From contig NW_027361917.1 of NCBI RefSeq assembly GCF_039654945.1, positions 58,652,001-58,716,000 on the forward strand: a DNA stretch of 64,000 nt, read 5' to 3'. The notes under the pieces are model-generated. The model was not told the DNA's origin. It made no database searches and worked only from the letters and a program-made list of their open reading frames with translations. Position numbers and translations under genes: made by a program. This document shows, in pieces, positions 22,476-43,003 of the stretch (within the stretch, counting starts at the first letter, position 1; the number at the start of each line of letters is the position of its first letter). The DNA comes from Dendrobates tinctorius (taxonomy: Eukaryota).

Positions 22476-22826
22476 AATAAATCACAGAGAAAAACAAGCG
22501 ATCAAAGAAATCCGACCAACAAAAGATGTATAAGAAACATATAAAAATTTATTCAAGGAAACACAGAAAAACAGGACAGGAATTAGAATCATGAGTTGAC
22601 CATGGTAGCGTGCAAGCGACCAATGGGGTACACATGGAGTAAAAGGACCTATTCGGAACATCAATAGAAGGCATATAGCTAGATGTATAATTGAAGAAAT
22701 AAATGCCAGTTCCTAACAAGGTATAATAATACGATCAAACAGGACAAGTACATAAATAAGTATTATAAGCAAATAAACAATAGCAGACTTAATACCTGTT
22801 ATGGTTGTATGTAACGGTCCACTCCA

Positions 22827-22877
22827 GTATACCCCCCCCAACGCACGTTTCGGCAGATGGCCTTTCTCAAGGGGTAC
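22827..22877 (-). ncRNA. Variant minimal type I hammerhead ribozyme (U3-A8 core), spacer 1
   Basis: GTACCCC-TTGAGAA-A-GGC-catct-GCC-GAAA-CGTGCG-TT^GGGG. Predicted cut between 22840 and 22839. Confidence 0.8.
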
Positions 22878-22879
22878 AG

Positions 22880-23780
22880 GGAAAAGAGGAAGTAAGGGGT
22901 ATTTAAGACAGAATCAACCAATCAATCCAAGGATCATACCCATGTGATCAATCACCAATGGTGCACGTGTGTCAAGGTTCCACCCAACCATAGCATCCGT
23001 TGTCATGGCTACATCCCATAGAACAAATTTATTCATATGGGTAATAGTAGACAGACTATCTGAAATAGAGAGCTAACACATAAATAAACACCTCCAAGAT
23101 GGATCTCTTTATTAGGAATCACTGCTAGCATAAGTAGTAGCCACCATTATTATATTGATCAGCGCATTAAAACCTGTGTATCGTCCAACAAAGATGACAT
23201 CATCGTTGGTGGAATCACATGAGTCGTCTTCACTTACTAACAACACCCAATATGGTACAAGTATTGGTGACCGCAGCACTAATCATGTGACTATCGTCAC
23301 GCTGCCGGGGCTCCTCCCCTATTGACGTCACCGCGCCGACGCGTCCACCTTTCATGACGCAAGTTGCCCCGACAACCAGTGCAATACAAGTATTGGTGAC
23401 CGCAGCGCTAGTTAAGTAACCATCATCACGCTGCCGGGGCTCCTCCCCCATTGACGTCACCACGCCGACGCGTCCACCAATCATGACGCAAGTTGCCCCG
23501 ACAACCAAAACAATGGGCGGCGGCGGCAACTCCAGCGTCATAGTTGTAACCACCCACAATAGGGAGGAATCAAAGAAATCAATGACTCCTCCCTAGCTGT
23601 ATCAGCCATGGCAACGCGTCCACTCATAATGACGCAGGCGTCACCCCGGCAACCAAAACAGCGGGCGGCAACGGCATCAATGTGACGTCAACTAAGTGAC
23701 TGGCCACAATGGAGATGCCGAGAGGCGTCCGATGTGAAGGAGACAGCAGTGCGCATGCGTACAGAGCGAACGTCATCCAA
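22880..23780 (-). promoter_or_regulatory. Putative PLE internal promoter upstream of the hammerhead (repeated in every spacer)
   Basis: TATA-like CTTAAATA (22900-22907), CCAAT boxes, E-box CACGTG, three full CRE TGACGTCA (23323, 23452, 23683), RFX-like GTTGCCCCGACAAC twice and GCCATGGCAAC, NRF1-like TGCGCATGCG (23750). Includes a 129-bp-period duplication at 23256-23507. Confidence 0.55.
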
Positions 23781-24295
23781 TGGCATAGGGTATAACAGCC
23801 ATAAACCTAAACAGAAACAATATAGGAGACACGCAGATTAATAGCCCGGCGCCGCCAGACAATAGTCCTAAAAATAGCGACAATAGCGATGGACAGCACA
23901 TGGTAACAAAATAAACTAGCAAAGGCGGTAATAAAGCATAGACCCAAGGCATAAAAGATATATATATGTATACAATGAAGATAACTCCTCAAAACAAACA
24001 AAAACACATAAAGAAGCAGAACATATATATATAGATTTCATAACAAAAATAGTCCTGCTATCGTTATCTTCATATGATAATATGCCGACAGGGAGATCCA
24101 GACACCCAGAGGGATAAAACAGTGGAGATGTTCAGCCGAGGGAACACAGATACACGAATATGGCAAAGGAAGACTCTGAAAAATAAAACCAAAATTAGAA
24201 CAAAAACAATAAAAACAATAAGATACGCAGCAAACAACCCATGATCAAAAAATGTAAATATAGCCAAACCATCATATATTCAAAAATAGAAACAC

Positions 24296-27200
24296 TTAAA
24301 TGAAGGGAGCAAAGCTAATAGCCTCGTTCAATCCCTTCGGATGTACTGTATCCAACAGCCATATCCATCTTGTTTCACGTTGCAACAGTCTCTGAGTTAG
24401 ATTGCCACCACGAACCCCCGGATTGATAATATCAATCCCGCGAATCCGTAGTAGAGACCCATCGCAACCATGTTTGAGTTTAAAATGTCGAGGTATTGTC
24501 CTGAGTGTGGAGGGATCCTCCTGGCCGGCTGCCGCCTGTATGCCCAACACGTGCTCACGAACACGTGTCTTCAATTGCCGCGTAGTCATACCAATATAGA
24601 TCAGGTTACATGGACATAGCGCAAAATAGATAACGTAACGTGAGGTACATAGAATACGGTTGCGAATATTAAATGTCCGAGTCCCTGAGGAATTGAAGAA
24701 CGTGTCCGTTCGCTCAATGTTGGAACAGGCGACACAGCGGCCACAAGGAGCACACCCACACACAGGACGAACCGAACTGAGAAAATTCTGTTTAGGTTCA
24801 GGTTGATAATGACTATGGACGAGATAATCCTTGAGATTCCTTGATCGACGGATAGTGACACTTGGTTTAGATGGAATAAATTTGTTAAGAATAGGGTCCG
24901 TCTGCAGAATGGGCCAAGCCTTTTGAAGACAGCCTCTCATTCTAGCAAATTGCGCATGGTAATTTGTAATAAATCTGATCTTATTATCAGTTTTAGTTTC
25001 CCTCTTCTTATATAGCAATGACTGACGTGTAGACCATCTTGCACGGTTAAAGGCTTTCTTAACAGATCTCCTACTATAGCCTCTCTCAAAGAACCTTTCC
25101 GAAAGGTCCTGGGCTTGGACTAAAAAATCCTGATCATTAGAGCAGATCCTGCGTAACCGCAGAAACTGCCCTATAGGAATAGAGTTGATCAGAGGTTTAG
25201 GGTGAGCAGAGGAGGCATGAAGTAACACATTGGAGGAAGTTTCCTTCCTAAATATTCCTGTCTGCAATGTATTATCAAAGTCTCTCCAAACATTGACATC
25301 TAAAAAACTAACCCTGGTCAAATCATAATGATATGTTATATGAATATTCATATTGTTCGAGTTAATTCCTTCCATAAAGGTTGATAACTGAAGCTCATTC
25401 CCCTGCCAGACCAGAAAAATGTCGTCGATGTACCGCACCCAAAAAGGGATGCGGTCCATCGACTGACACTGGTCAGACAGGGGGAGGTCCCTCTCCCACA
25501 GCCCCAGGAACAGGTTGGCATACGATGGGGCAAAGGAGGCCCCCATAGCTGTCCCCTGGAGCTGTAGGTAGAAGGACCCCATGAACGTAAAAAAATTATG
25601 GGTCAGGGAAAACTCGAGCAATTCAATGACCAGGGAGATGATTTCCGTAGGTAAGTTTGACATGTTTAAAAAATAACGAGTAGCAGCCAACCCATCGGCA
25701 TGTCTTATGCTGGTGTAAAGGGACTCAATGTCACCTGTCACCAGCATATTACCACTCCCGATATGAAGGCCATCAACTCTCCTAAGGAATTCACCGGTAT
25801 CGAGTAAAAAGGAGGGCAGACTTTCAACGAGGGGCTGTAATTTGGAGTCAATCCAACGATTGACTTTTTCCAAATAATTCCCAGAGCCAGAAATAATAGG
25901 ACGACCGGGGGGGGCCTCGAGACACTTGTGTATTTTAGGTAATAAATAAAATGTTGCAATGGTAGGTTCCTGTACCTGCATCGTAAGAGCCAATTCCTTG
26001 GTGATAACACCATTTTGAACGGCTGTATTAATGATTTTATTCAGCTGTAACACAAATGAGGCAAGGGGGTTAAACGTCAAACGCTTGTAGCATACCTTGT
26101 TAGTTAATTGTCTGAATGCCTCCTTCTCATAGAGGAACTTAGGCCATATTACCACATTGCCCCCTTTATCAGCTGGCTTTAACACAATGTCAGGAAGCCC
26201 CCTCAGGACGTCCAATCTCATGCGTTCCTCACGACTAAGATTGTCCCTGCCCACACCCCCAGGGATTTTCATAAAGTCCTTAGTAACGACCTGAACAAAA
26301 AGATCAATAGCTGCACATGTCGCCAGTGGAGGAAATTTTTTAGATTTCATTCTGATGGATTGAGGAATCTTACCTCCCTCTCCAGTTGTATGTTCAATGG
26401 AAAGATCCTCAAGATCCTGCAGGGCTACTTGCTCCTCTTCTGTGGGAAAAAGATTTTGCAAATCTGAGTTGAAAAAATGTCTCTTGAAAATCAGAGATCT
26501 AGCAAAAAGATGTAGATCTTTGATGGCCATAAAAGCATTGAAATGAGACTTTGGAGAAAACGTGAGTCCCCTACTCAACAGTGAAAGATCAGAATCAGTT
26601 AAAATATGAGAGCTCAGGTTAATTACCTTATTGTTATTATTAGTACGTTCAGGTGATCTGAACTTCATCCGCTTGTAGGGGTGGAAATTCACGTCTCTTA
26701 CTCTCTTAGATCTTGCTCCAGATCGTGTAGTTATCGATGAAGTAGACCATTCTGAAGAATCACTCATGGAGGAAAGGGAACTCACTGAAAATACTCCATG
26801 CATTTTAGGGGCTTTGATATTAAATTTTCTCCAAGCATAGACACTCTTATTTGCAAAATCTTTAGTATCACGATGCAATTTAGAGGTCTGCATTTCATTT
26901 ATTTTTTTGACACAAATGTCCAGATTCTTTTCAATACGAGATTCATATTCGACAACCTTCTCAGATGGACACAATGCTTTAAAATTACGTTCAGCCTCAT
27001 CAATCGATTTATCCAAGTCTACAATAAGCTTAGAATTCCGTTCAATCAATAGCTTCAAGAAAACATTAGAACAAACACCACATGCTTCCTCCCATCGACT
27101 GATAAAATCATCATCGTCGATAGGGAATGAGGGAATAACCCTTATTCTCAGACCTCTGGGAATAATGTTAAAAGAGACATATTTCTCCAGGAAGGCCCTA

Positions 27201-27433
27201 TTCCACCATATCCTCGTCCGTTTTAGTAACAGTTTCTCAATTTCAAGAACTTGGCTATCAAGTGTTTGATCCATATGTGGCTGTAACTCGACTCCACCTG
27301 TCCCGAATACCTGGTCTATTTGTCCGAGCCAGGCCTTCTCTTTAGCTCGAAAATCCATATCCAAAACACCAAAAGAACCTGTGCATAACACAGTAAAATT
27401 AATACATAACCATATTAAGGATACTAATCCCAT
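24296..27433 (-). CDS. PLE reverse transcriptase + GIY-YIG endonuclease, copy 1 (1045 aa; probable true start MDFRAK at 27358, 1020 aa)
   Basis: KVINLS, KPADKGG, LPKIHK..PGRPIIS, GDIESLYTSI, GTAMGASFAPSYANLF, RYIDD, FLDV. Cys-rich linker CAPCGRCVAC. VIY..CPC..YIGMTTRQLKTRVREH..RE..WI..L.T..P.GLN. Confidence 0.97.
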   Translation of the reverse strand: MGLVSLIWLCINFTVLCTGSFGVLDMDFRAKEKAWLGQIDQVFGTGGVELQPHMDQTLDSQVLEIEKLLLKRTRIWWNRAFLEKYVSFNIIPRGLRIRVIPSFPIDDDDFISRWEEACGVCSNVFLKLLIERNSKLIVDLDKSIDEAERNFKALCPSEKVVEYESRIEKNLDICVKKINEMQTSKLHRDTKDFANKSVYAWRKFNIKAPKMHGVFSVSSLSSMSDSSEWSTSSITTRSGARSKRVRDVNFHPYKRMKFRSPERTNNNNKVINLSSHILTDSDLSLLSRGLTFSPKSHFNAFMAIKDLHLFARSLIFKRHFFNSDLQNLFPTEEEQVALQDLEDLSIEHTTGEGGKIPQSIRMKSKKFPPLATCAAIDLFVQVVTKDFMKIPGGVGRDNLSREERMRLDVLRGLPDIVLKPADKGGNVVIWPKFLYEKEAFRQLTNKVCYKRLTFNPLASFVLQLNKIINTAVQNGVITKELALTMQVQEPTIATFYLLPKIHKCLEAPPGRPIISGSGNYLEKVNRWIDSKLQPLVESLPSFLLDTGEFLRRVDGLHIGSGNMLVTGDIESLYTSIRHADGLAATRYFLNMSNLPTEIISLVIELLEFSLTHNFFTFMGSFYLQLQGTAMGASFAPSYANLFLGLWERDLPLSDQCQSMDRIPFWVRYIDDIFLVWQGNELQLSTFMEGINSNNMNIHITYHYDLTRVSFLDVNVWRDFDNTLQTGIFRKETSSNVLLHASSAHPKPLINSIPIGQFLRLRRICSNDQDFLVQAQDLSERFFERGYSRRSVKKAFNRARWSTRQSLLYKKRETKTDNKIRFITNYHAQFARMRGCLQKAWPILQTDPILNKFIPSKPSVTIRRSRNLKDYLVHSHYQPEPKQNFLSSVRPVCGCAPCGRCVACSNIERTDTFFNSSGTRTFNIRNRILCTSRYVIYFALCPCNLIYIGMTTRQLKTRVREHVLGIQAAAGQEDPSTLRTIPRHFKLKHGCDGSLLRIRGIDIINPGVRGGNLTQRLLQRETRWIWLLDTVHPKGLNEAISFAPFI

Positions 27434-27846
27434 TCAATCAGATATAAATATACCAATCCTAGACTAAAAGTATGAAAAATTGGGATTATAATGAGGGATA
27501 TCTATAACAGGATAATCGCAAAATATAATAAATCACAGAGAAAAACAAGCGATCAAAGAAATCCGACCAACAAAAGATGTATAAGAAACATATAAAAATT
27601 TATTCAAGGAAACACAGAAAAACAGGACAGGAATTAGAATCATGAGTTGACCATGGTAGCGTGCAAGCGACCAATGGGGTACACATGGAGTAAAAGGACC
27701 TATTCGGAACATCAATAGAAGGCATATAGCTAGATGTATAATTGAAGAAATAAATGCCAGTTCCTAACAAGGTATAATAATACGATCAAACAGGACAAGT
27801 ACATAAATAAGTATTATAAGCAAATAAACAATAGCAGACTTAATAC
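27379..27846 (-). other. Putative 468-nt leader intron of the PLE
   Basis: Donor CAG|GTATTA ~45 nt after the hammerhead cut. Acceptor ttttactgtgttatgcacAG|G lies 20 nt before the MDFRAK ATG. U-rich interior. PLEs are known to retain leader introns. Confidence 0.55.
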
Positions 27847-27877
27847 CTGTTATGGTTGTATGTAACGGTCCACTCCA

Positions 27878-27928
27878 GTATACCCCCCCCAACGCACGTT
27901 TCGGCAGATGGCCTTTCTCAAGGGGTAC
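27878..27928 (-). ncRNA. Variant hammerhead ribozyme, spacer 2
   Basis: Identical to spacer 1. Predicted cut 27891/27890. Confidence 0.8.
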
Positions 27929-29346
27929 AGGGAAAAGAGGAAGTAAGGGGTATTTAAGACAGAATCAACCAATCAATCCAAGGATCATACCCATGTGATC
28001 AATCACCAATGGTGCACGTGTGTCAAGGTTCCACCCAACCATAGCATCCGTTGTCATGGCTACATCCCATAGAACAAATTTATTCATATGGGTAATAGTA
28101 GACAGACTATCTGAAATAGAGAGCTAACACATAAATAAACACCTCCAAGATGGATCTCTTTATTAGGAATCACTGCTAGCATAAGTAGTAGCCACCATTA
28201 TTATATTGATCAGCGCATTAAAACCTGTGTATCGTCCAACAAAGATGACATCATCGTTGGTGGAATCACATGAGTCGTCTTCACTTACTAACAACACCCA
28301 ATACGGTACAAGTATTGGTGACCGCAGCACTAATCATGTGACTATCGTCACGCTGCCGGGGCTCCTCCCCTATTGACGTCACCGCGCCGACGCGTCCACC
28401 TTTCATGACGCAAGTTGCCCCGACAACCAGTGCAATACAAGTATTGGTGACCGCAGCGCTAGTTAAGTAACCATCATCACGCTGCCGGGGCTCCTCCCCC
28501 ATTGACGTCACCACGCCGACGCGTCCACCAATCATGACGCAAGTTGCCCCGACAACCAAAACAATGGGCGGCGGCGGCAACTCCAGCGTCATAGTTGTAA
28601 CCACCCACAATAGGGAGGAATCAAAGAAATCAATGACTCCTCCCTAGCTGTATCAGCCATGGCAACGCGTCCACTCATAATGACGCAGGCGTCACCCCGG
28701 CAACCAAAACAGCGGGCGGCAACGGCATCAATGTGACGTCAACTAAGTGACTGGCCACAATGGAGATGCCGAGAGGCGTCCGATGTGAAGGAGACAGCAG
28801 TGCGCATGCGTACAGAGCGAACGTCATCCAATGGCATAGGGTATAACAGCCATAAACCTAAACAGAAACAATATAGGAGACACGCAGATTAATAGCCCGG
28901 CGCCGCCAGACAATAGTCCTAAAAATAGCGACAATAGCGATGGACAGCACATGGTAACAAAATAAACTAGCAAAGGCGGTAATAAAGCATAGACCCAAGG
29001 CATAAAAGATATATATATGTATACAATGAAGATAACTCCTCAAAACAAACAAAAACACATAAAGAAGCAGAACATATATATATAGATTTCATAACAAAAA
29101 TAGTCCTGCTATCGTTATCTTCATATGATAATATGCCGACAGGGAGATCCAGACACCCAGAGGGATAAAACAGTGGAGATGTTCAGCCGAGGGAACACAG
29201 ATACACGAATATGGCAAAGGAAGACTCTGAAAAATAAAACCAAAATTAGAACAAAAACAATAAAAACAATAAGATACGCAGCAAACAACCCATGATCAAA
29301 AAATGTAAATATAGCCAAACCATCATATATTCAAAAATAGAAACAC

Positions 29347-32300
29347 TTAAATGAAGGGAGCAAAGCTAATAGCCTCGTTCAATCCCTTCGGATGTACTGT
29401 ATCCAACAGCCATATCCATCTTGTTTCACGTTGCAACAGTCTCTGAGTTAGATTGCCACCACGAACCCCCGGATTGATAATATCAATCCCGCGAATCCGT
29501 AGTAGAGACCCATCGCAACCATGTTTGAGTTTAAAATGTCGAGGTATTGTCCTGAGTGTGGAGGGATCCTCCTGGCCGGCTGCCGCCTGTATGCCCAACA
29601 CGTGCTCACGAACACGTGTCTTCAATTGCCGCGTAGTCATACCAATATAGATCAGGTTACATGGACATAGCGCAAAATAGATAACGTAACGTGAGGTACA
29701 TAGAATACGGTTGCGAATATTAAATGTCCGAGTCCCTGAGGAATTGAAGAACGTGTCCGTTCGCTCAATGTTGGAACAGGCGACACAGCGGCCACAAGGA
29801 GCACACCCACACACAGGACGAACCGAACTGAGAAAATTCTGTTTAGGTTCAGGTTGATAATGACTATGGACGAGATAATCCTTGAGATTCCTTGATCGAC
29901 GGATAGTGACACTTGGTTTAGATGGAATAAATTTGTTAAGAATAGGGTCCGTCTGCAGAATGGGCCAAGCCTTTTGAAGACAGCCTCTCATTCTAGCAAA
30001 TTGCGCATGGTAATTTGTAATAAATCTGATCTTATTATCAGTTTTAGTTTCCCTCTTCTTATATAGCAATGACTGACGTGTAGACCATCTTGCACGGTTA
30101 AAGGCTTTCTTAACAGATCTCCTACTATAGCCTCTCTCAAAGAACCTTTCCGAAAGGTCCTGGGCTTGGACTAAAAAATCCTGATCATTAGAGCAGATCC
30201 TGCGTAACCGCAGAAACTGCCCTATAGGAATAGAGTTGATCAGAGGTTTAGGGTGAGCAGAGGAGGCATGAAGTAACACATTGGAGGAAGTTTCCTTCCT
30301 AAATATTCCTGTCTGCAATGTATTATCAAAGTCTCTCCAAACATTGACATCTAAAAAACTAACCCTGGTCAAATCATAATGATATGTTATATGAATATTC
30401 ATATTGTTCGAGTTAATTCCTTCCATAAAGGTTGATAACTGAAGCTCATTCCCCTGCCAGACCAGAAAAATGTCGTCGATGTACCGCACCCAAAAAGGGA
30501 TGCGGTCCATCGACTGACACTGGTCAGACAGGGGGAGGTCCCTCTCCCACAGCCCCAGGAACAGGTTGGCATACGATGGGGCAAAGGAGGCCCCCATAGC
30601 TGTCCCCTGGAGCTGTAGGTAGAAGGACCCCATGAACGTAAAAAAATTATGGGTCAGGGAAAACTCGAGCAATTCAATGACCAGGGAGATGATTTCCGTA
30701 GGTAAGTTTGACATGTTTAAAAAATAACGAGTAGCAGCCAACCCATCGGCATGTCTTATGCTGGTGTAAAGGGACTCAATGTCACCTGTCACCAGCATAT
30801 TACCACTCCCGATATGAAGGCCATCAACTCTCCTAAGGAATTCACCGGTATCGAGTAAAAAGGAGGGCAGACTTTCAACGAGGGGCTGTAATTTGGAGTC
30901 AATCCAACGATTGACTTTTTCCAAATAATTCCCAGAGCCAGAAATAATAGGACGACCAGGGGGGGCCTCGAGACACTTGTGTATTTTAGGTAATAAATAA
31001 AATGTTGCAATGGTAGGTTCCTGTACCTGCATCGTAAGAGCCAATTCCTTGGTGATAACACCATTTTGAACGGCTGTATTAATGATTTTATTCAGCTGTA
31101 ACACAAATGAGGCAAGGGGGTTAAACGTCAAACGCTTGTAGCATACCTTGTTAGTTAATTGTCTGAATGCCTCCTTCTCATAGAGGAACTTAGGCCATAT
31201 TACCACATCGCCCCCTTTATCAGCTGGCTTTAACACAATGTCAGGAAGCCCCCTCAGGACGTCCAATCTCATGCGTTCCTCACGACTAAGATTGTCCCTG
31301 CCCACACCCCCAGGGATTTTCATAAAGTCCTTAGTAACGACCTGAACAAAAAGATCAATAGCTGCACATGTCGCCAGTGGAGGAAATTTTTTAGATTTCA
31401 TTCTGATGGATTGAGGAATCTTACCTCCCTCTCCAGTTGTATGTTCAATGGAAAGATCCTCAAGATCCTGCAGGGCTACTTGCTCCTCTTCTGTGGGAAA
31501 AAGATTTTGCAAATCTGAGTTGAAAAAATGTCTCTTGAAAATCAGAGATCTAGCAAAAAGATGTAGATCTTTGATGGCCATAAAAGCATTGAAATGAGAC
31601 TTTGGAGAAAACGTGAGTCCCCTACTCAACAGTGAAAGATCAGAATCAGTTAAAATATGAGAGCTCAGGTTAATTACCTTATTGTTATTATTAGTACGTT
31701 CAGGTGATCTGAACTTCATCCGCTTGTAGGGGTGGAAATTCACGTCTCTTACTCTCTTAGATCTTGCTCCAGATCGTGTAGTTATCGATGAAGTAGACCA
31801 TTCTGAAGAATCACTCATGGAGGAAAGGGAACTCACTGAAAATACTCCATGCATTTTAGGGGCTTTGATATTAAATTTTCTCCAAGCATAGACACTCTTA
31901 TTTGCAAAATCTTTAGTATCACGATGCAATTTAGAGGTCTGCATTTCATTTATTTTTTTGACACAAATGTCCAGATTCTTTTCAATACGAGATTCATATT
32001 CGACAACCTTCTCAGATGGACACAATGCTTTAAAATTACGTTCAGCCTCATCAATCGATTTATCCAAGTCTACAATAAGCTTAGAATTCCGTTCAATCAA
32101 TAGCTTCAAGAAAACATTAGAACAAACACCACATGCTTCCTCCCATCGACTGATAAAATCATCATCGTCGATAGGGAATGAGGGAATAACCCTTATTCTC
32201 AGACCTCTGGGAATAATGTTAAAAGAGACATATTTCTCCAGGAAGGCCCTATTCCACCATATCCTCGTCCGTTTTAGTAACAGTTTCTCAATTTCAAGAA

Positions 32301-32484
32301 CTTGGCTATCAAGTGTTTGATCCATATGTGGCTGTAACTCGACTCCACCTGTCCCGAATACCTGGTCTATTTGTCCGAGCCAGGCCTTCTCTTTAGCTCG
32401 AAAATCCATATCCAAAACACCAAAAGAACCTGTGCATAACACAGTAAAATTAATACATAACCATATTAAGGATACTAATCCCAT
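29347..32484 (-). CDS. PLE RT + GIY-YIG, copy 2 (N->D in KGGNVV)
   Basis: Intact ORF with the same motifs. Confidence 0.97.
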   Translation of the reverse strand: MGLVSLIWLCINFTVLCTGSFGVLDMDFRAKEKAWLGQIDQVFGTGGVELQPHMDQTLDSQVLEIEKLLLKRTRIWWNRAFLEKYVSFNIIPRGLRIRVIPSFPIDDDDFISRWEEACGVCSNVFLKLLIERNSKLIVDLDKSIDEAERNFKALCPSEKVVEYESRIEKNLDICVKKINEMQTSKLHRDTKDFANKSVYAWRKFNIKAPKMHGVFSVSSLSSMSDSSEWSTSSITTRSGARSKRVRDVNFHPYKRMKFRSPERTNNNNKVINLSSHILTDSDLSLLSRGLTFSPKSHFNAFMAIKDLHLFARSLIFKRHFFNSDLQNLFPTEEEQVALQDLEDLSIEHTTGEGGKIPQSIRMKSKKFPPLATCAAIDLFVQVVTKDFMKIPGGVGRDNLSREERMRLDVLRGLPDIVLKPADKGGDVVIWPKFLYEKEAFRQLTNKVCYKRLTFNPLASFVLQLNKIINTAVQNGVITKELALTMQVQEPTIATFYLLPKIHKCLEAPPGRPIISGSGNYLEKVNRWIDSKLQPLVESLPSFLLDTGEFLRRVDGLHIGSGNMLVTGDIESLYTSIRHADGLAATRYFLNMSNLPTEIISLVIELLEFSLTHNFFTFMGSFYLQLQGTAMGASFAPSYANLFLGLWERDLPLSDQCQSMDRIPFWVRYIDDIFLVWQGNELQLSTFMEGINSNNMNIHITYHYDLTRVSFLDVNVWRDFDNTLQTGIFRKETSSNVLLHASSAHPKPLINSIPIGQFLRLRRICSNDQDFLVQAQDLSERFFERGYSRRSVKKAFNRARWSTRQSLLYKKRETKTDNKIRFITNYHAQFARMRGCLQKAWPILQTDPILNKFIPSKPSVTIRRSRNLKDYLVHSHYQPEPKQNFLSSVRPVCGCAPCGRCVACSNIERTDTFFNSSGTRTFNIRNRILCTSRYVIYFALCPCNLIYIGMTTRQLKTRVREHVLGIQAAAGQEDPSTLRTIPRHFKLKHGCDGSLLRIRGIDIINPGVRGGNLTQRLLQRETRWIWLLDTVHPKGLNEAISFAPFI

Positions 32485-32678
32485 TCAATCAGATATAAAT
32501 ATACCAATCCTAGACTAAAAGTATGAAAAATTGGGATTATAATGAGGGATATCTATAACAGGATAATCGCAAAATATAATAAATCACAGAGAAAAACAAG
32601 CGATCAAAGAAATCCGACCAACAAAAGATGTATAAGAAACATATAAAAATGTATTCAAGGAAACACAGAAAAAAAACA

Positions 32679-32940
32679 CAGGGCTACTTGCTCCTCTTCT
32701 GTGGGAAAAAGATTTTGCAAATCTGAGTTGAAAAAATGTCTCTTGAAAATCAGAGATCTAGCAAAAAGATGTAGATCTTTGATGGCCATAAAAGCATTGA
32801 AATGAGACTTTGGAGAAAACGTGAGTCCCCTACTCAACAGTGAAAGATCAGAATCAGTTAAAATATGAGAGCTCAGGTTAATTACCTTATTGTTATTATT
32901 AGTACGCACGTTTCGGCAGATGGCCTTTCTCAAGGGGTAC
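32679..32940 (-). other. Type-B spacer: hammerhead truncated at its cleavage site and fused to a 228-bp copy of ORF sequence
   Basis: 32679-32906 matches 26420-26647. Sense junction GAAACGTGCGT|ACTAAT with 3-nt CGT microhomology. Confidence 0.92.
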
Positions 32941-34358
32941 AGGGAAAAGAGGAAGTAAGGGGTATTTAAGACAGAATCAACCAATCAATCCAAGGATCAT
33001 ACCCATGTGATCAATCACCAATGGTGCACGTGTGTCAAGGTTCCACCCAACCATAGCATCCGTTGTCATGGCTACATCCCATAGAACAAATTTATTCATA
33101 TGGGTAATAGTAGACAGACTATCTGAAATAGAGAGCTAACACATAAATAAACACCTCGAAGATGGATCTCTTTATTAGGAATCACTGCTAGCATAAGTAG
33201 TAGCCACCATTATTATATTGATCAGCGCATTAAAACCTGTGTATCGTCCAACAAAGATGACATCATCGTTGGTGGAATCACATGAGTCGTCTTCACTTAC
33301 TAACAACACCCAATATGGTACAAGTATTGGTGACCGCAGCACTAATCATGTGACTATCGTCACGCTGCCGGGGCTCCTCCCCTATTGACGTCACCGCGCC
33401 GACGCGTCCACCTTTCATGACGCAAGTTGCCCCGACAACCAGTGCAATACAAGTATTGGTGACCGCAGCGCTAGTTAAGTAACCATCATCACGCTGCCGG
33501 GGCTCCTCCCCCATTGACGTCACCACGCCGACGCGTCCACCAATCATGACGCAAGTTGCCCCGACAACCAAAACAATGGGCGGCGGCGGCAACTCCAGCG
33601 TCATAGTTGTAACCACCCACAATAGGGAGGAATCAAAGAAATCAATGACTCCTCCCTAGCTGTATCAGCCATGGCAACGCGTCCACTCATAATGACGCAG
33701 GCGTCACCCCGGCAACCAAAACAGCGGGCGGCAACGGCATCAATGTGACGTCAACTAAGTGACTGGCCACAATGGAGATGCCGAGAGGCGTCCGATGTGA
33801 AGGAGACAGCAGTGCGCATGCGTACAGAGCGAACGTCATCCAATGGCATAGGGTATAACAGCCATAAACCTAAACAGAAACAATATAGGAGACACGCAGA
33901 TTAATAGCCCGGCGCCGCCAGACAATAGTCCTAAAAATAGCGACAATAGCGATGGACAGCACATGGTAACAAAATAAACTAGCAAAGGCGGTAATAAAGC
34001 ATAGACCCAAGGCATAAAAGATATATATATGTATACAATGAAGATAACTCCTCAAAACAAACAAAAACACATAAAGAAGCAGAACATATATATATAGATT
34101 TCATAACAAAAATAGTCCTGCTATCGTTATCTTCATATGATAATATGCCGACAGGGAGATCCAGACACCCAGAGGGATAAAACAGTGGAGATGTTCAGCC
34201 GAGGGAACACAGATACACGAATATGGCAAAGGAAGACTCTGAAAAATAAAACCAAAATTAGAACAAAAACAATAAAAACAATAAGATACGCAGCAAACAA
34301 CCCATGATCAAAAAATGTAAATATAGCCAAACCATCATATATTCAAAAATAGAAACAC

Positions 34359-37300
34359 TTAAATGAAGGGAGCAAAGCTAATAGCCTCGTTCAATCCCTT
34401 CGGATGTACTGTATCCAACAGCCATATCCATCTTGTTTCACGTTGCAACAGTCTCTGAGTTAGATTGCCACCACGAACCCCCGGATTGATAATATCAATC
34501 CCGCGAATCCGTAGTAGAGACCCATCGCAACCATGTTTGAGTTTAAAATGTCGAGGTATTGTCCTGAGTGTGGAGGGATCCTCCTGGCCGGCTGCCGCCT
34601 GTATGCCCAACACGTGCTCACGAACACGTGTCTTCAATTGCCGCGTAGTCATACCAATATAGATCAGGTTACATGGACATAGCGCAAAATAGATAACGTA
34701 ACGTGAGGTACATAGAATACGGTTGCGAATATTAAATGTCCGAGTCCCTGAGGAATTGAAGAACGTGTCCGTTCGCTCAATGTTGGAACAGGCGACACAG
34801 CGGCCACAAGGAGCACACCCACACACAGGACGAACCGAACTGAGAAAATTCTGTTTAGGTTCAGGTTGATAATGACTATGGACGAGATAATCCTTGAGAT
34901 TCCTTGATCGACGGATAGTGACACTTGGTTTAGATGGAATAAATTTGTTAAGAATAGGGTCCGTCTGCAGAATGGGCCAAGCCTTTTGAAGACAGCCTCT
35001 CATTCTAGCAAATTGCGCATGGTAATTTGTAATAAATCTGATCTTATTATCAGTTTTAGTTTCCCTCTTCTTATATAGCAATGACTGACGTGTAGACCAT
35101 CTTGCACGGTTAAAGGCTTTCTTAACAGATCTCCTACTATAGCCTCTCTCAAAGAACCTTTCCGAAAGGTCCTGGGCTTGGACTAAAAAATCCTGATCAT
35201 TAGAGCAGATCCTGCGTAACCGCAGAAACTGCCCTATAGGAATAGAGTTGATCAGAGGTTTAGGGTGAGCAGAGGAGGCATGAAGTAACACATTGGAGGA
35301 AGTTTCCTTCCTAAATATTCCTGTCTGCAATGTATTATCAAAGTCTCTCCAAACATTGACATCTAAAAAACTAACCCTGGTCAAATCATAATGATATGTT
35401 ATATGAATATTCATATTGTTCAAGTTAATTCCTTCCATAAAGGTTGATAACTGAAGCTCATTCCCCTGCCAGACCAGAAAAATGTCGTCGATGTACCGCA
35501 CCCAAAAAGGGATGCGGTCCATCGACTGACACTGGTCAGACAGGGGGAGGTCCCTCTCCCACAGCCCCAGGAACAGGTTGGCATACGATGGGGCAAAGGA
35601 GGCCCCCATAGCTGTCCCCTGGAGCTGTAGGTAGAAGGACCCCATGAACGTAAAAAAATTATGGGTCAGGGAAAACTCGAGCAATTCAATGACCAGGGAG
35701 ATGATTTCCGTAGGTAAGTTTGACATGTTTAAAAAATAACGAGTAGCAGCCAACCCATCGGCATGTCTTATGCTGGTGTAAAGGGACTCAATGTCACCTG
35801 TCACCAGCATATTACCACTCCCGATATGAAGGCCATCAACTCTCCTAAGGAATTCACCGGTATCGAGTAAAAAGGAGGGCAGACTTTCAACGAGGGGCTG
35901 TAATTTGGAGTCAATCCAACGATTGACTTTTTCCAAATAATTCCCAGAGCCAGAAATAATAGGACGACCAGGGGGGGCCTCGAGACACTTGTGTATTTTA
36001 GGTAATAAATAAAATGTTGCAATGGTAGGTTCCTGTACCTGCATCGTAAGAGCCAATTCCTTGGTGATAACACCATTTTGAACGGCTGTATTAATGATTT
36101 TATTCAGCTGTAACACAAATGAGGCAAGGGGGTTAAACGTCAAACGCTTGTAGCATACCTTGTTAGTTAATTGTCTGAATGCCTCCTTCTCATAGAGGAA
36201 CTTAGGCCATATTACCACATTGCCCCCTTTATCAGCTGGCTTTAACACAATGTCAGGAAGCCCCCTCAGGACGTCCAATCTCATGCGTTCCTCACGACTA
36301 AGATTGTCCCTGCCCACACCCCCAGGGATTTTCATAAAGTCCTTAGTAACGACCTGAACAAAAAGATCAATAGCTGCACATGTCGCCAGTGGAGGAAATT
36401 TTTTAGATTTCATTCTGATGGATTGAGGAATCTTACCTCCCTCTCCAGTTGTATGTTCAATGGAAAGATCCTCAAGATCCTGCAGGGCTACTTGCTCCTC
36501 TTCTGTGGGAAAAAGATTTTGCAAATCTGAGTTGAAAAAATGTCTCTTGAAAATCAGAGATCTAGCAAAAAGATGTAGATCTTTGATGGCCATAAAAGCA
36601 TTGAAATGAGACTTTGGAGAAAACGTGAGTCCCCTACTCAACAGTGAAAGATCAGAATCAGTTAAAATATGAGAGCTCAGGTTAATTACCTTATTGTTAT
36701 TATTAGTACGTTCAGGTGATCTGAACTTCATCCGCTTGTAGGGGTGGAAATTCACGTCTCTTACTCTCTTAGATCTTGCTCCAGATCGTGTAGTTATCGA
36801 TGAAGTAGACCATTCTGAAGAATCACTCATGGAGGAAAGGGAACTCACTGAAAATACTCCATGCATTTTAGGGGCTTTGATATTAAATTTTCTCCAAGCA
36901 TAGACACTCTTATTTGCAAAATCTTTAGTATCACGATGCAATTTAGAGGTCTGCATTTCATTTATTTTTTTGACACAAATGTCCAGATTCTTTTCAATAC
37001 GAGATTCATATTCGACAACCTTCTCAGATGGACACAATGCTTTAAAATTACGTTCAGCCTCATCAATCGATTTATCCAAGTCTACAATAAGCTTAGAATT
37101 CCGTTCAATCAATAGCTTCAAGAAAACATTAGAACAAACACCACATGCTTCCTCCCATCGACTGATAAAATCATCATCGTCGATAGGGAATGAGGGAATA
37201 ACCCTTATTCTCAGACCTCTGGGAATAATGTTAAAAGAGACATATTTCTCCAGGAAGGCCCTATTCCACCATATCCTCGTCCGTTTTAGTAACAGTTTCT

Positions 37301-37496
37301 CAATTTCAAGAACTTGGCTATCAAGTGTTTGATCCATATGTGGCTGTAACTCGACTCCACCTGTCCCGAATACCTGGTCTATTTGTCCGAGCCAGGCCTT
37401 CTCTTTAGCTCGAAAATCCATATCCAAAACACCAAAAGAACCTGTGCATAACACAGTAAAATTAATACATAACCATATTAAGGATACTAATCCCAT
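34359..37496 (-). CDS. PLE RT + GIY-YIG, copy 3 (S->L in INSNNM)
   Basis: Intact ORF with the same motifs. Confidence 0.97.
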   Translation of the reverse strand: MGLVSLIWLCINFTVLCTGSFGVLDMDFRAKEKAWLGQIDQVFGTGGVELQPHMDQTLDSQVLEIEKLLLKRTRIWWNRAFLEKYVSFNIIPRGLRIRVIPSFPIDDDDFISRWEEACGVCSNVFLKLLIERNSKLIVDLDKSIDEAERNFKALCPSEKVVEYESRIEKNLDICVKKINEMQTSKLHRDTKDFANKSVYAWRKFNIKAPKMHGVFSVSSLSSMSDSSEWSTSSITTRSGARSKRVRDVNFHPYKRMKFRSPERTNNNNKVINLSSHILTDSDLSLLSRGLTFSPKSHFNAFMAIKDLHLFARSLIFKRHFFNSDLQNLFPTEEEQVALQDLEDLSIEHTTGEGGKIPQSIRMKSKKFPPLATCAAIDLFVQVVTKDFMKIPGGVGRDNLSREERMRLDVLRGLPDIVLKPADKGGNVVIWPKFLYEKEAFRQLTNKVCYKRLTFNPLASFVLQLNKIINTAVQNGVITKELALTMQVQEPTIATFYLLPKIHKCLEAPPGRPIISGSGNYLEKVNRWIDSKLQPLVESLPSFLLDTGEFLRRVDGLHIGSGNMLVTGDIESLYTSIRHADGLAATRYFLNMSNLPTEIISLVIELLEFSLTHNFFTFMGSFYLQLQGTAMGASFAPSYANLFLGLWERDLPLSDQCQSMDRIPFWVRYIDDIFLVWQGNELQLSTFMEGINLNNMNIHITYHYDLTRVSFLDVNVWRDFDNTLQTGIFRKETSSNVLLHASSAHPKPLINSIPIGQFLRLRRICSNDQDFLVQAQDLSERFFERGYSRRSVKKAFNRARWSTRQSLLYKKRETKTDNKIRFITNYHAQFARMRGCLQKAWPILQTDPILNKFIPSKPSVTIRRSRNLKDYLVHSHYQPEPKQNFLSSVRPVCGCAPCGRCVACSNIERTDTFFNSSGTRTFNIRNRILCTSRYVIYFALCPCNLIYIGMTTRQLKTRVREHVLGIQAAAGQEDPSTLRTIPRHFKLKHGCDGSLLRIRGIDIINPGVRGGNLTQRLLQRETRWIWLLDTVHPKGLNEAISFAPFI

Positions 37497-37690
37497 TCAA
37501 TCAGATATAAATATACCAATCCTAGACTAAAAGTATGAAAAATTGGGATTATAATGAGGGATATCTATAACAGGATAATCGCAAAATATAATAAATCACA
37601 GAGAAAAACAAGCGATCAAAGAAATCCGACCAACAAAAGATGTATAAGAAACATATAAAAATGTATTCAAGGAAACACAGAAAAAAAACA

Positions 37691-37952
37691 CAGGGCTACT
37701 TGCTCCTCTTCTGTGGGAAAAAGATTTTGCAAATCTGAGTTGAAAAAATGTCTCTTGAAAATCAGAGATCTAGCAAAAAGATGTAGATCTTTGATGGCCA
37801 TAAAAGCATTGAAATGAGACTTTGGAGAAAACGTGAGTCCCCTACTCAACAGTGAAAGATCAGAATCAGTTAAAATATGAGAGCTCAGGTTAATTACCTT
37901 ATTGTTATTATTAGTACGCACGTTTCGGCAGATGGCCTTTCTCAAGGGGTAC
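37691..37952 (-). other. Type-B spacer, second copy
   Basis: Identical junctions to 32679-32940. Confidence 0.92.
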
Positions 37953-39370
37953 AGGGAAAAGAGGAAGTAAGGGGTATTTAAGACAGAATCAACCAATCAA
38001 TCCAAGGATCATACCCATGTGATCAATCACCAATGGTGCACGTGTGTCAAGGTTCCACCCAACCATAGCATCCGTTGTCATGGCTACATCCCATAGAACA
38101 AATTTATTCATATGGGTAATAGTAGACAGACTATCTGAAATAGAGAGCTAACACATAAATAAACACCTCCAAGATGGATCTCTTTATTAGGAATCACTGC
38201 TAGCATAAGTAGTAGCCACCATTATTATATTGATCAGCGCATTAAAACCTGTGTATCGTCCAACAAAGATGACATCATCGTTGGTGGAATCACATGAGTC
38301 GTCTTCACTTACTAACAACACCCAATATGGTACAAGTATTGGTGACCGCAGCACTAATCATGTGACTATCGTCACGCTGCCGGGGCTCCTCCCCTATTGA
38401 CGTCACCGCGCCGACGCGTCCACCTTTCATGACGCAAGTTGCCCCGACAACCAGTGCAATACAAGTATTGGTGACCGCAGCGCTAGTTAAGTAACCATCA
38501 TCACGCTGCCGGGGCTCCTCCCCCATTGACGTCACCACGCCGACGCGTCCACCAATCATGACGCAAGTTGCCCCGACAACCAAAACAATGGGCGGCGGCG
38601 GCAACTCCAGCGTCATAGTTGTAACCACCCACAATAGGGAGGAATCAAAGAAATCAATGACTCCTCCCTAGCTGTATCAGCCATGGCAACGCGTCCACTC
38701 ATAATGACGCAGGCGTCACCCCGGCAACCAAAACAGCGGGCGGCAACGGCATCAATGTGACGTCAACTAAGTGACTGGCCACAATGGAGATGCCGAGAGG
38801 CGTCCGATGTGAAGGAGACAGCAGTGCGCATGCGTACAGAGCGAACGTCATCCAATGGCATAGGGTATAACAGCCATAAACCTAAACAGAAACAATATAG
38901 GAGACACGCAGATTAATAGCCCGGCGCCGCCAGACAATAGTCCTAAAAATAGCGACAATAGCGATGGACAGCACATGGTAACAAAATAAACTAGCAAAGG
39001 CGGTAATAAAGCATAGACCCAAGGCATAAAAGATATATATATGTATACAATGAAGATAACTCCTCAAAACAAACAAAAACACATAAAGAAGCAGAACATA
39101 TATATATAGATTTCATAACAAAAATAGTCCTGCTATCGTTATCTTCATATGATAATATGCCGACAGGGAGATCCAGACACCCAGAGGGATAAAACAGTGG
39201 AGATGTTCAGCCGAGGGAACACAGATACACGAATATGGCAAAGGAAGACTCTGAAAAATAAAACCAAAATTAGAACAAAAACAATAAAAACAATAAGATA
39301 CGCAGCAAACAACCCATGATCAAAAAATGTAAATATAGCCAAACCATCATATATTCAAAAATAGAAACAC

Positions 39371-42300
39371 TTAAATGAAGGGAGCAAAGCTAATAGCCTC
39401 GTTCAATCCCTTCGGATGTACTGTATCCAACAGCCATATCCATCTTGTTTCACGTTGCAACAGTCTCTGAGTTAGATTGCCACCACGAACCCCCGGATTG
39501 ATAATATCAATCCCGCGAATCCGTAGTAGAGACCCATCGCAACCATGTTTGAGTTTAAAATGTCGAGGTATTGTCCTGAGTGTGGAGGGATCCTCCTGGC
39601 CGGCTGCCGCCTGTATGCCCAACACGTGCTCACGAACACGTGTCTTCAATTGCCGCGTAGTCATACCAATATAGATCAGGTTACATGGACATAGCGCAAA
39701 ATAGATAACGTAACGTGAGGTACATAGAATACGGTTGCGAATATTAAATGTCCGAGTCCCTGAGGAATTGAAGAACGTGTCCGTTCGCTCAATGTTGGAA
39801 CAGGCGACACAGCGGCCACAAGGAGCACACCCACACACAGGACGAACCGAACTGAGAAAATTCTGTTTAGGTTCAGGTTGATAATGACTATGGACGAGAT
39901 AATCCTTGAGATTCCTTGATCGACGGATAGTGACACTTGGTTTAGATGGAATAAATTTGTTAAGAATAGGGTCCGTCTGCAGAATGGGCCAAGCCTTTTG
40001 AAGACAGCCTCTCATTCTAGCAAATTGCGCATGGTAATTTGTAATAAATCTGATCTTATTATCAGTTTTAGTTTCCCTCTTCTTATATAGCAATGACTGA
40101 CGTGTAGACCATCTTGCACGGTTAAAGGCTTTCTTAACAGATCTCCTACTATAGCCTCTCTCAAAGAACCTTTCCGAAAGGTCCTGGGCTTGGACTAAAA
40201 AATCCTGATCATTAGAGCAGATCCTGCGTAACCGCAGAAACTGCCCTATAGGAATAGAGTTGATCAGAGGTTTAGGGTGAGCAGAGGAGGCATGAAGTAA
40301 CACATTGGAGGAAGTTTCCTTCCTAAATATTCCTGTCTGCAATGTATTATCAAAGTCTCTCCAAACATTGACATCTAAAAAACTAACCCTGGTCAAATCA
40401 TAATGATATGTTATATGAATATTCATATTGTTCGAGTTAATTCCTTCCATAAAGGTTGATAACTGAAGCTCATTCCCCTGCCAGACCAGAAAAATGTCGT
40501 CGATGTACCGCACCCAAAAAGGGATGCGGTCCATCGACTGACACTGGTCAGACAGGGGGAGGTCCCTCTCCCACAGCCCCAGGAACAGGTTGGCATACGA
40601 TGGGGCAAAGGAGGCCCCCATAGCTGTCCCCTGGAGCTGTAGGTAGAAGGACCCCATGAACGTAAAAAAATTATGGGTCAGGGAAAACTCGAGCAATTCA
40701 ATGACCAGGGAGATGATTTCCGTAGGTAAGTTTGACATGTTTAAAAAATAACGAGTAGCAGCCAACCCATCGGCATGTCTTATGCTGGTGTAAAGGGACT
40801 CAATGTCACCTGTCACCAGCATATTACCACTCCCGATATGAAGGCCATCAACTCTCCTAAGGAATTCACCGGTATCGAGTAAAAAGGAGGGCAGACTTTC
40901 AACGAGGGGCTGTAATTTGGAGTCAATCCAACGATTGACTTTTTCCAAATAATTCCCAGAGCCAGAAATAATAGGACGACCGGGGGGGGCCTCGAGACAC
41001 TTGTGTATTTTAGGTAATAAATAAAATGTTGCAATGGTAGGTTCCTGTACCTGCATCGTAAGAGCCAATTCCTTGGTGATAACACCATTTTGAACGGCTG
41101 TATTAATGATTTTATTCAGCTGTAACACAAATGAGGCAAGGGGGTTAAACGTCAAACGCTTGTAGCATACCTTGTTAGTTAATTGTCTGAATGCCTCCTT
41201 CTCATAGAGGAACTTAGGCCATATTACCACATTGCCCCCTTTATCAGCTGGCTTTAACACAATGTCAGGAAGCCCCCTCAGGACGTCCAATCTCATGCGT
41301 TCCTCACGACTAAGATTGTCCCTGCCCACACCCCCAGGGATTTTCATAAAGTCCTTAGTAACGACCTGAACAAAAAGATCAATAGCTGCACATGTCGCCA
41401 GTGGAGGAAATTTTTTAGATTTCATTCTGATGGATTGAGGAATCTTACCTCCCTCTCCAGTTGTATGTTCAATGGAAAGATCCTCAAGATCCTGCAGGGC
41501 TACTTGCTCCTCTTCTGTGGGAAAAAGATTTTGCAAATCTGAGTTGAAAAAATGTCTCTTGAAAATCAGAGATCTAGCAAAAAGATGTAGATCTTTGATG
41601 GCCATAAAAGCATTGAAATGAGACTTTGGAGAAAACGTGAGTCCCCTACTCAACAGTGAAAGATCAGAATCAGTTAAAATATGAGAGCTCAGGTTAATTA
41701 CCTTATTGTTATTATTAGTACGTTCAGGTGATCTGAACTTCATCCGCTTGTAGGGGTGGAAATTCACGTCTCTTACTCTCTTAGATCTTGCTCCAGATCG
41801 TGTAGTTATCGATGAAGTAGACCATTCTGAAGAATCACTCATGGAGGAAAGGGAACTCACTGAAAATACTCCATGCATTTTAGGGGCTTTGATATTAAAT
41901 TTTCTCCAAGCATAGACACTCTTATTTGCAAAATCTTTAGTATCACGATGCAATTTAGAGGTCTGCATTTCATTTATTTTTTTGACACAAATGTCCAGAT
42001 TCTTTTCAATACGAGATTCATATTCGACAACCTTCTCAGATGGACACAATGCTTTAAAATTACGTTCAGCCTCATCAATCGATTTATCCAAGTCTACAAT
42101 AAGCTTAGAATTCCGTTCAATCAATAGCTTCAAGAAAACATTAGAACAAACACCACATGCTTCCTCCCATCGACTGATAAAATCATCATCGTCGATAGGG
42201 AATGAGGGAATAACCCTTATTCTCAGACCTCTGGGAATAATGTTAAAAGAGACATATTTCTCCAGGAAGGCCCTATTCCACCATATCCTCGTCCGTTTTA

Positions 42301-42508
42301 GTAACAGTTTCTCAATTTCAAGAACTTGGCTATCAAGTGTTTGATCCATATGTGGCTGTAACTCGACTCCACCTGTCCCGAATACCTGGTCTATTTGTCC
42401 GAGCCAGGCCTTCTCTTTAGCTCGAAAATCCATATCCAAAACACCAAAAGAACCTGTGCATAACACAGTAAAATTAATACATAACCATATTAAGGATACT
42501 AATCCCAT
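39371..42508 (-). CDS. PLE RT + GIY-YIG, copy 4
   Basis: Intact ORF with the same motifs. Confidence 0.97.
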   Translation of the reverse strand: MGLVSLIWLCINFTVLCTGSFGVLDMDFRAKEKAWLGQIDQVFGTGGVELQPHMDQTLDSQVLEIEKLLLKRTRIWWNRAFLEKYVSFNIIPRGLRIRVIPSFPIDDDDFISRWEEACGVCSNVFLKLLIERNSKLIVDLDKSIDEAERNFKALCPSEKVVEYESRIEKNLDICVKKINEMQTSKLHRDTKDFANKSVYAWRKFNIKAPKMHGVFSVSSLSSMSDSSEWSTSSITTRSGARSKRVRDVNFHPYKRMKFRSPERTNNNNKVINLSSHILTDSDLSLLSRGLTFSPKSHFNAFMAIKDLHLFARSLIFKRHFFNSDLQNLFPTEEEQVALQDLEDLSIEHTTGEGGKIPQSIRMKSKKFPPLATCAAIDLFVQVVTKDFMKIPGGVGRDNLSREERMRLDVLRGLPDIVLKPADKGGNVVIWPKFLYEKEAFRQLTNKVCYKRLTFNPLASFVLQLNKIINTAVQNGVITKELALTMQVQEPTIATFYLLPKIHKCLEAPPGRPIISGSGNYLEKVNRWIDSKLQPLVESLPSFLLDTGEFLRRVDGLHIGSGNMLVTGDIESLYTSIRHADGLAATRYFLNMSNLPTEIISLVIELLEFSLTHNFFTFMGSFYLQLQGTAMGASFAPSYANLFLGLWERDLPLSDQCQSMDRIPFWVRYIDDIFLVWQGNELQLSTFMEGINSNNMNIHITYHYDLTRVSFLDVNVWRDFDNTLQTGIFRKETSSNVLLHASSAHPKPLINSIPIGQFLRLRRICSNDQDFLVQAQDLSERFFERGYSRRSVKKAFNRARWSTRQSLLYKKRETKTDNKIRFITNYHAQFARMRGCLQKAWPILQTDPILNKFIPSKPSVTIRRSRNLKDYLVHSHYQPEPKQNFLSSVRPVCGCAPCGRCVACSNIERTDTFFNSSGTRTFNIRNRILCTSRYVIYFALCPCNLIYIGMTTRQLKTRVREHVLGIQAAAGQEDPSTLRTIPRHFKLKHGCDGSLLRIRGIDIINPGVRGGNLTQRLLQRETRWIWLLDTVHPKGLNEAISFAPFI

Positions 42509-42952
42509 TCAATCAGATATAAATATACCAATCCTAGACTAAAAGTATGAAAAATTGGGATTATAATGAGGGATATCTATAACAGGATAATCGCAAAATA
42601 TAATAAATCACAGAGAAAAACAAGCGATCAAAGAAATCCGACCAACAAAAGATGTATAAGAAACATATAAAAATGTATTCAAGGAAACACAGAAAAACAG
42701 GACAGGAATTAGAATCATGAGTTGACCATGGTAGCGTGCAAGCGACCAATGGGGTACACATGGAGTAAAAGGACCTATTCGGAACATCAATAGAAGGCAT
42801 ATAGCTAGATGTATAATTGAAGAAATAAATGCCAGTTCCTAACAAGGTATAATAATACGATCAAACAGGACAAGTACATAAATAAGTATTATAAGCAAAT
42901 AAACAATAGCAGACTTAATACCTGTTATGGTTGTATGTAACGGTCCACTCCA

Positions 42953-43003
42953 GTATACCCCCCCCAACGCACGTTTCGGCAGATGGCCTTTCTCAAGGGG
43001 TAC
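42953..43003 (-). ncRNA. Variant hammerhead ribozyme, spacer 5
   Basis: Identical to spacer 1. Predicted cut 42966/42965. Confidence 0.8.

Follow-up and report, generated by a model that had tools for sequence, protein, structure and literature searches.

A rearrangement scar beside the predicted cut site of a hammerhead ribozyme in a Penelope-like element array of the frog Dendrobates tinctorius

We analysed a 64,000-nt stretch of the Dendrobates tinctorius genome (NCBI RefSeq assembly GCF_039654945.1, contig NW_027361917.1, positions 58,652,001 to 58,716,000, hereafter the window), in which a tandem array of a Penelope-like element (PLE) interrupts a Tc1-like transposase gene (table 1). Self-BLAST gives the array two periods, 5051 bp where consecutive units are joined by a normal junction and 5012 bp where they are joined by what we call the scar, and the present order of junctions along the array is normal, scar, scar, normal, scar. 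The normal junctions lie at 27623-27891 and 42698-42966, with a terminal copy of the same segment at 22572-22840. The target-site duplication that flanks the array is 15-16 bp long, and the transposase reading frame is restored when the flanks are joined with one copy of the duplication removed; thus, 22476-48789 in its entirety amounts to one insertion, complete with its duplicated target site. The Tc1-like transposon that hosts this 26-kb array has inverted ends at 21161-21369 and 48892-49101.

Table 1. Coordinates of the array, its open reading frames, hammerhead motifs and scar copies in the window.
Feature	Position	Strand	Remark	Source
Whole PLE insertion	22476..48789	-	5 direct units and 318-nt partial unit, then inverted 5'-truncated copy	self-BLAST
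Left target-site duplication copy	22460..22475	.	ATACCAACAACAGTG(T), within Tc1-like transposase ORF	
Right target-site duplication copy	48790..48805	.	exact match of left copy	
5'-most partial unit of direct array	47979..48296	-	truncated at equivalent of 28209	
Inverted 5'-truncated copy	48297..48789	+	begins at A15.1 of hammerhead, tail equivalent to 27406	self-BLAST, 27406-27899 vs 48789-48296
PLE ORF, 1045 aa	24296..27433	-	reverse transcriptase and C-terminal GIY-YIG endonuclease	ORF list, Pfam
Same-length ORF copies	29347-32484, 34359-37496, 39371-42508, 44422-47559	-		
Predicted intact minimal hammerhead	27883..27925	-	predicted cut between U17 (27891) and G1.1 (27890)	
Identical hammerhead copies	22832-22874, 42958-43000	-		
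Normal leader segment replaced by scar	27623..27891	-	269 nt, from U17 and the G-run downstream	
Identical normal leader copies	22572-22840, 42698-42966	-		
ORF segment copied into scar	26420..26647	-	residues ~263-338	
Scar copy 1	32674..32903	-	5-nt filler (part of re-copied AAACACAG) and ORF-derived block; ACG overlap to 32906	
Scar copy 2	37686..37915	-	same sequence as copy 1	
Scar copy 3	47749..47978	-	identical; higher-order-repeat partner of copy 1	
Truncated hammerhead in scar copies	32904..32937, 37916-37949, 47979-48012	-	ends at U16.1	

The array element is a canonical endonuclease-bearing PLE whose sense strand is the minus strand. Its 1045-aa ORF has an RVT_1 match in Pfam at residues 530-680, and a GIY-YIG match (E=0.0023) that falls short of the Pfam cut-off; the VIY...YIG motifs are nevertheless visible, with a Cys-rich linker upstream of them. 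The best protein matches come from D. tinctorius itself (83%) and from Ranitomeya and Anomaloglossus (53-56%), the array ORF's own protein not being found on record among these matches. Homologues are frog PLE-type proteins, some of the more distant of which bear PF01541 (the Pfam GIY-YIG family). The PLE is very young and belongs, like its ribozyme, to known kinds. Each unit of the element also contains a 129-bp doublet in its 3' untranslated part (28307-28558 in one copy).

A partial tandem (pLTR), an adjacent inverted and 5'-truncated copy, a tail and a target-site duplication are all present, so that the layout (partial tandem, inverted copy, tails) is that of a standard PLE insertion (PMC8557442). 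On the sense strand the direct array ends 3' in a 'tail' at the equivalent of 27526; relative to the first ATG, at 27433, this tail lies 93 nt upstream and that of the inverted copy 27 nt within the ORF. The partial unit, which ends at 48296, and the inverted copy overlap by at most 1 nt. The first base of the inverted copy at this joint (48290-48320) corresponds to A15.1, with which the hammerhead palindrome ACGTGCGT opens; from there the copy continues past the predicted cut site and on into the leader.

The element carries a predicted minimal hammerhead which reads, on the sense strand from 27925 to 27883, CCCC-UUGAGAA-A-GGC-CAUCU-GCC-GAAA-CGUGCGU-U-GGGGGGGG. Helix I is formed by CCCC/GGGG and helix II by GGC/GCC; the core consists of UUGAGAA (U3-A8) and GAAA, there is a bulged A, and position 17 is a U. 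The stem-III palindrome ACGUGCGU is self-complementary with two G-U pairs. In the minimal hammerheads of PLEs, the core may covary to U3-A8, a G10.1-C11.1 pair is typical, and positions 15.2-16.2 are palindromic, so that two copies jointly form helix III (PMC4209133). All four hallmarks of that description, namely the U3-A8 core, the extra A, the G10.1-C11.1 pair and the palindrome, are found in the array motif. The general core CUGANGA ... GAAA, with C3-G8 or a covarying U3-A8, appears here as UUGAGAA ... GAAA, position 17 is not G, and helix I is complete. The extra A recurs in two canonical-core hammerheads of other PLEs within the window. A cofold of two copies takes the topology of a double-hammerhead dimer at -43.8 kcal/mol. 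The Rfam hammerhead models gave no match at the gathering threshold nor at E<=10, a blank that is expected and uninformative because the motif is minimal and has no closed helix III. Judged on its sequence, the array motif is a credible PLE-type minimal hammerhead, real as a motif. A TATA-like TTAAATA is found on the minus strand at 27951-27957, some 25-30 nt before the conserved hammerhead block begins at its 5' side, so that transcription might be initiated directly at the ribozyme.

Additional clues come from read data, comprising 24 runs that are all Logan assembled contigs, which carry neither direction nor raw ends. In contigs from four runs of the same species, a 42-nt block (27884-27926) is common to diverged subfamilies whose flanks do not match. 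Depth over the hammerhead block ranges from 727 (bin mean) to 3223, whereas the adjoining non-coding sequence has about 50-200. The only comparable spike corresponds to the catalytic motifs of the reverse transcriptase (30404-30791), leaving the hammerhead as the sole non-coding stretch conserved across subfamilies in the reads. A variant of loop II that differs by 1 nt in length is seen among the contigs. These patterns indicate that the hammerhead motif is under constraint. Of the loose ends listed for the assembled contigs, those at the hammerhead block sit on its outer borders (27883/4 and 27924-7); none is listed at 27890-2, and these contigs showed no pile-up of ends at the cut site. A metagenome scan with the 32-nt ribozyme core returned no further copies. 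As to the second spike, contig depth there reaches 8832 over the coding sequence of the RT motifs (QGTAMG..., YIDD), a region with at least 90% DNA identity over stretches of about 40 nt that is common to many PLE families of the genome.

In three of the junctions the leader is rearranged. At the first of them, 230 nt (32674-32903) stand in place of the 269 nt of normal leader (27623-27891). Within the scar, the 228 bp at 32679-32906 are 100% identical, and in the same orientation, to ORF sequence at 26420-26647, as they are to the matching stretch of the ORF in each of the remaining four units and to the two further scar blocks, at 37691 and 47754. An earlier note on this DNA had reported just such a copy in three spacers, and it is found at all three sites. 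On the hammerhead side and in the sense direction, the normal sequence reads GAAACGTGCGT followed by TGGGG, the scar reads GAAACGTGCGT followed by ACTAAT, and the ORF source reads GAACGT followed by ACTAAT. The two partners overlap by 3 nt (32904-32906, ACG on the plus strand), which bears out the microhomology noticed earlier. The last ribozyme base that the scar can retain is U16.1; U17, the base immediately 5' of the predicted cut, is absent. The junction had been placed exactly on the cleavage site: it does lie within 1 nt of it, at U16.1, but with U17 missing the coincidence is not exact. Since U17 is gone from the scar copies together with the 3' strand of helix I, cofolding predicts no such helix for them.

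The other junction reads, on the plus strand, ...GGAAACACAGAAAAA, then AAACA, then the shared CAG, and then GGCTAC. The five extra bases together with CAG repeat the octamer AAACACAG, which is situated 13 nt upstream, and CAG, the last three bases of this octamer, is also homologous to the ORF entry point TGCAGGGC. What had been taken for slippage on an A-run (A5 to A8 plus CA) is thus better read as a second copying of the octamer. Because the re-copied octamer adds a slip-back to the CAG and ACG homologies, the scar records three short-homology switches, not two. Splicing was rejected as its origin, the replaced segment having no bounding splice signals, as was RNA-level ligation of a cleavage product to an ORF fragment, in which U17 would be retained. 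A reading based on a pause at a hairpin was also dropped: local RNA folds are inconsistent at the other exit and entry points, and they gave no convincing structure to account for the other exit points.

The composition of the units provides further information on how the array was assembled. Only seven positions vary among the five units, which are 99.9% identical, and a higher-order repeat of 15,075 bp (22841-33221 vs 37916-48296) is 99.97% identical between its two copies. The three scar copies show 0 differences over 326 nt. Because they are identical and lie within the higher-order repeat, the three scars represent one event, as the earlier note had allowed. Two informative positions define the haplotypes U1(T,G), U2(C,A), U3(T,A), U4(T,G), U5(C,A), and this distribution fits a two-unit original followed by two unequal crossovers. 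The ancestral form would have been tail, U1, normal junction, U2, scar, 318 nt and inverted copy, with two units only. A first crossover between the partial unit and U1, and a second between positions 412 and 3066 of misaligned units, the latter giving the hybrid U3, would then have taken the array from two units to five and placed the scar in three positions; this history yields the junction order seen today. If so, the five-unit array was built largely by unequal crossover at the DNA level, contrary to the previous suggestion that it grew by jumps between ribozyme products. From the same reconstruction we infer that the scar is the 5'-most junction of the original, the last one made, 318 nt before the truncated end. 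A T/G polymorphism at the equivalent of 27600 does not track the type of junction: two of the normal junctions carry T, while the third and all three scars carry G (27600, 42675, 22549, 32651, 37663 and 47726). It lies 23 nt from the junction-specific segment and misfits the simple history of two crossovers; accounting for it takes either a short tract of conversion or a crossover inside those 23 bp.

Does the scar mark a site at which the RNA was cut? The predicted cut site is crossed seamlessly three times in the same insertion: in the tail copy (22840/22841), at the normal junction (27890/27891) and in the inverted copy (48305/48306), which ends 8 nt beyond it. The template was therefore usually RNA that had not been cut, or else a nick that was bridged perfectly. 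The A15.1 terminus of the inverted copy and the landing of the scar at U16.1 correspond to the two edges of the 8-nt palindrome, and since they flank it in this way, the ribozyme region seems to be a preferred place for the start or stop of cDNA on the RNA. Two of the six breakpoints that are not tails fall inside the 9-nt window ACGUGCGUU, for which a uniform null gives ~5e-5, a post hoc figure; the apparent hot spot rests on these two breakpoints, noticed after the fact. The A15.1 end is not explained by cleavage. We regard the association with the ribozyme as real, but as lying with stem III, as an exposed, dimer-forming or protein-bound segment beside helix II, as much as with cleavage. 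The position of the scar beside the cut site is suggestive, while in vivo cleavage is neither required nor demonstrated by these data. Breakpoints at hammerheads do not follow a general rule, given that two other PLE insertions in the window have none: in a second PLE family the inverted arm begins ~330 nt upstream of its own hammerhead, and the inverted arm of a small hammerhead element at 8693-9240 stops 46 nt past that element's cut site.

On balance, we consider it somewhat probable that the scar was formed by serial short-homology template switches of the reverse transcriptase, late in one PLE insertion, and was later amplified by recombination. In this scenario cDNA synthesis would have begun in the leader, giving the PLE 'tail', and copied two units. 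Near the end of its course the enzyme would have slipped back 13 nt in the leader, entered the ORF on CAG, copied 228 nt and switched on ACG to the stem-III palindrome of the hammerhead. The cDNA would then have run 318 nt further, stopped, and become linked to a short inverted cDNA for which the other target strand had served as primer. A likely reason for the hot spot would be that a minimal hammerhead offers an exposed, protein-bound or dimer-forming segment next to the stable helix II. The scar is attributed to reverse transcription because it occupies the 5'-most position and shows serial short-homology switches; this authorship is drawn from context and signature, and replicative DNA repair gives the same signature. 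The scar could also have pre-existed in the source copy that was transcribed. As regards the initial proposal, the part that invoked template switching agrees with the signature of serial short-homology switches and with the location of the scar at a messy 5' end. The part that had the enzyme jump onto a cleaved 3' end fares worse, since the terminal U17 is missing and the internal 3-nt homology explains the landing equally well.

That latter idea nevertheless deserves to be set against the two other explanations that may be envisaged. It holds that the hammerhead cut the RNA in vivo and that the cDNA left the ORF piece and jumped to the cleaved upstream 3' end (...GUGCGUU, with its cyclic phosphate), a course of events that we regard as unlikely; that the scar would in addition record cleavage, with product ends serving as regular acceptor templates, is in our opinion equally doubtful. 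In its favour, the PLE minimal hammerhead is well formed and conserved and the landing misses the predicted scissile bond by 1 nt, and hammerhead cleavage has been treated as a possible pre-processing of PLE templates (PMC6431247; PMC8557442). With breakpoints uniform over the 5051-nt unit, such proximity has a chance of ~1/1000, but the figure becomes 1/54 to 2/54 (about 2-4%) if an acceptor need only offer the CGT homology, for which a unit has 54 sites, stem III contributing two. A scar without U17 fits, as it stands, neither a blunt jump nor ligation of the RNA product; moreover, this is a single event, the inverted copy and two normal junctions cross the cut site uncut, and the second breakpoint at A15.1 is left unexplained by cleavage. 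The Anolis PLE, for its part, inserts in vitro without cleavage, and RNA-seq revealed no ends at the site (PMC11167929).

The same 54 CGT sites make the coincidence only moderately unlikely under an event at the DNA level, after insertion or in the source locus. Here a leader break would have been filled, through microhomology-mediated replicative repair or end joining, with 228 bp copied from ORF sequence nearby, and the proximity to the ribozyme would be due to chance. Homologies of 3 nt, a short templated filler and a donor in the same orientation 1.2 kb or 3.8 kb away are also typical of such repair, and the array has demonstrably undergone DNA recombination. Yet the scar sits at the 5'-most junction of the original, beside a truncation and an inversion typical of reverse transcription, and a second independent breakpoint lies only 7 nt off, at the other edge of the palindrome; we thus find both the repair event and the copying of the ORF piece by this route quite unlikely. 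Finally, the scar junction or its threefold repetition might be an artefact of a mis-assembled, near-identical tandem array. Units that are 99.9% identical invite such errors, PLE tandem and inverted structures being known to trouble assemblies (PMC8557442), and the runs, as assembled contigs, show no read across the scar. An artefact is very improbable, however, in view of the three identical copies, their place within a higher-order repeat that is coherent and whose SNP haplotypes agree, the biologically sensible homologies at the junctions, and the non-zero read depth over the scar bins in a DNA run. Serial template switching by the reverse transcriptase thus remains the explanation that we prefer.

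Target-primed insertions of LINE-1 are known for twin priming, 5' inversions and microhomology at 5' junctions. The array resembles LINE-1-type 5' ends in its inverted, 5'-truncated piece, its short homologies and its small templated filler near the 5' end, and differs from them in having a PLE enzyme, a 15-16 bp duplication, both ends 'tail-out', and breakpoints clustered on a ribozyme stem. Closer parallels are found among PLEs. The minimal type-I hammerheads described by Cervera & De la Pena (2014, PMC4209133) are located, like that of the array, in the PLE pseudo-LTR; the present motif, a predicted ribozyme, belongs to one particular sequence family from a dendrobatid-like frog and has two central G-U wobbles in its palindrome. 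The only biochemical study of a PLE hammerhead deals with PAc, the endonuclease-bearing and tandem Poseidon element of Anolis carolinensis; there, 'tails' result because reverse transcription is initiated internally, close to where pLTR and ORF meet, and unprocessed RNA is the main substrate (PMC11167929). Hammerhead cleavage in PAc is protein-assisted and dispensable for insertion in vitro, and no in vivo ends were observed (PMC11167929). As another vertebrate endonuclease-bearing tandem PLE, the array has tails, one ending 93 nt before the ATG and the other 27 nt past it, that fit internal initiation as set out there, and its seamless crossings of the cut site agree with the use of unprocessed RNA by PAc (PMC11167929). 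In contrast, the PAc hammerhead overlaps the start codon, and the text available describes no ribozyme rearrangement scar (PMC11167929).

Hammerhead processing has been proposed for telomere-attached PLEs, or Terminons (PMC6431247), and for metazoan retrozymes (PMC7229834), the common idea being that cleavage readies RNA ends for reverse transcription or for the formation of circles and tandems. Those cases involve 3'-terminal ribozymes by telomeric repeats, or small non-coding repeats that form circles (PMC6431247; PMC7229834), whereas the array consists of a 5-kb coding element that would have expanded mainly by DNA recombination. The role of PLE hammerheads has been an open question since 2014 (PMC4209133) and is termed 'still unclear' in PMC8557442. 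We put forward, as a tentative and rather unlikely prospect, that the PLE hammerhead is active in vivo in this frog and that its products, or a dimeric stem III, direct where the reverse transcriptase starts or stops on the RNA. If so, junctions, inverted-arm starts and tandem joints should be enriched genome-wide within a few nt of the cut, and would provide a genomic footprint for the long-sought function of these ribozymes. Counts of breakpoints in very young PLE insertions across the genome could settle whether ribozyme processing or structure shapes cDNA synthesis. The array locus alone, with a scar 1 nt from the cut and a breakpoint 7-8 nt away, justifies such a census but not a claim of cleavage.

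Other elements of related kinds occur in the window. A third, degenerate PLE-like element has direct flanking repeats at 52592-53709 and 60244-61400, 90% identical to each other, and broken ORFs on the plus strand; a simple pattern search found no hammerhead in it. The small non-coding element at 8693-9240 (minus strand) carries a hammerhead with the canonical CUGAUGA core at 8800 and inverted termini of ~29 bp, and is inserted in an arm of another PLE with a 12-bp duplication (TTCCTTCATTTA). The inverted arms of the second PLE family, at 9239-10048 and 18763-19554, are 92-96% identical. Its minus-strand arm has an intact hammerhead with the core at 9716, and its plus-strand arm shows a 12-nt duplication before the core, a deletion in helix II and a further deletion from 3 nt after the predicted cut. 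The ORFs of this second family are flanked by two tandem repeats of 9 copies each, with a period of 133 bp at 11603-12802 and of 124 bp at 16740-17873.
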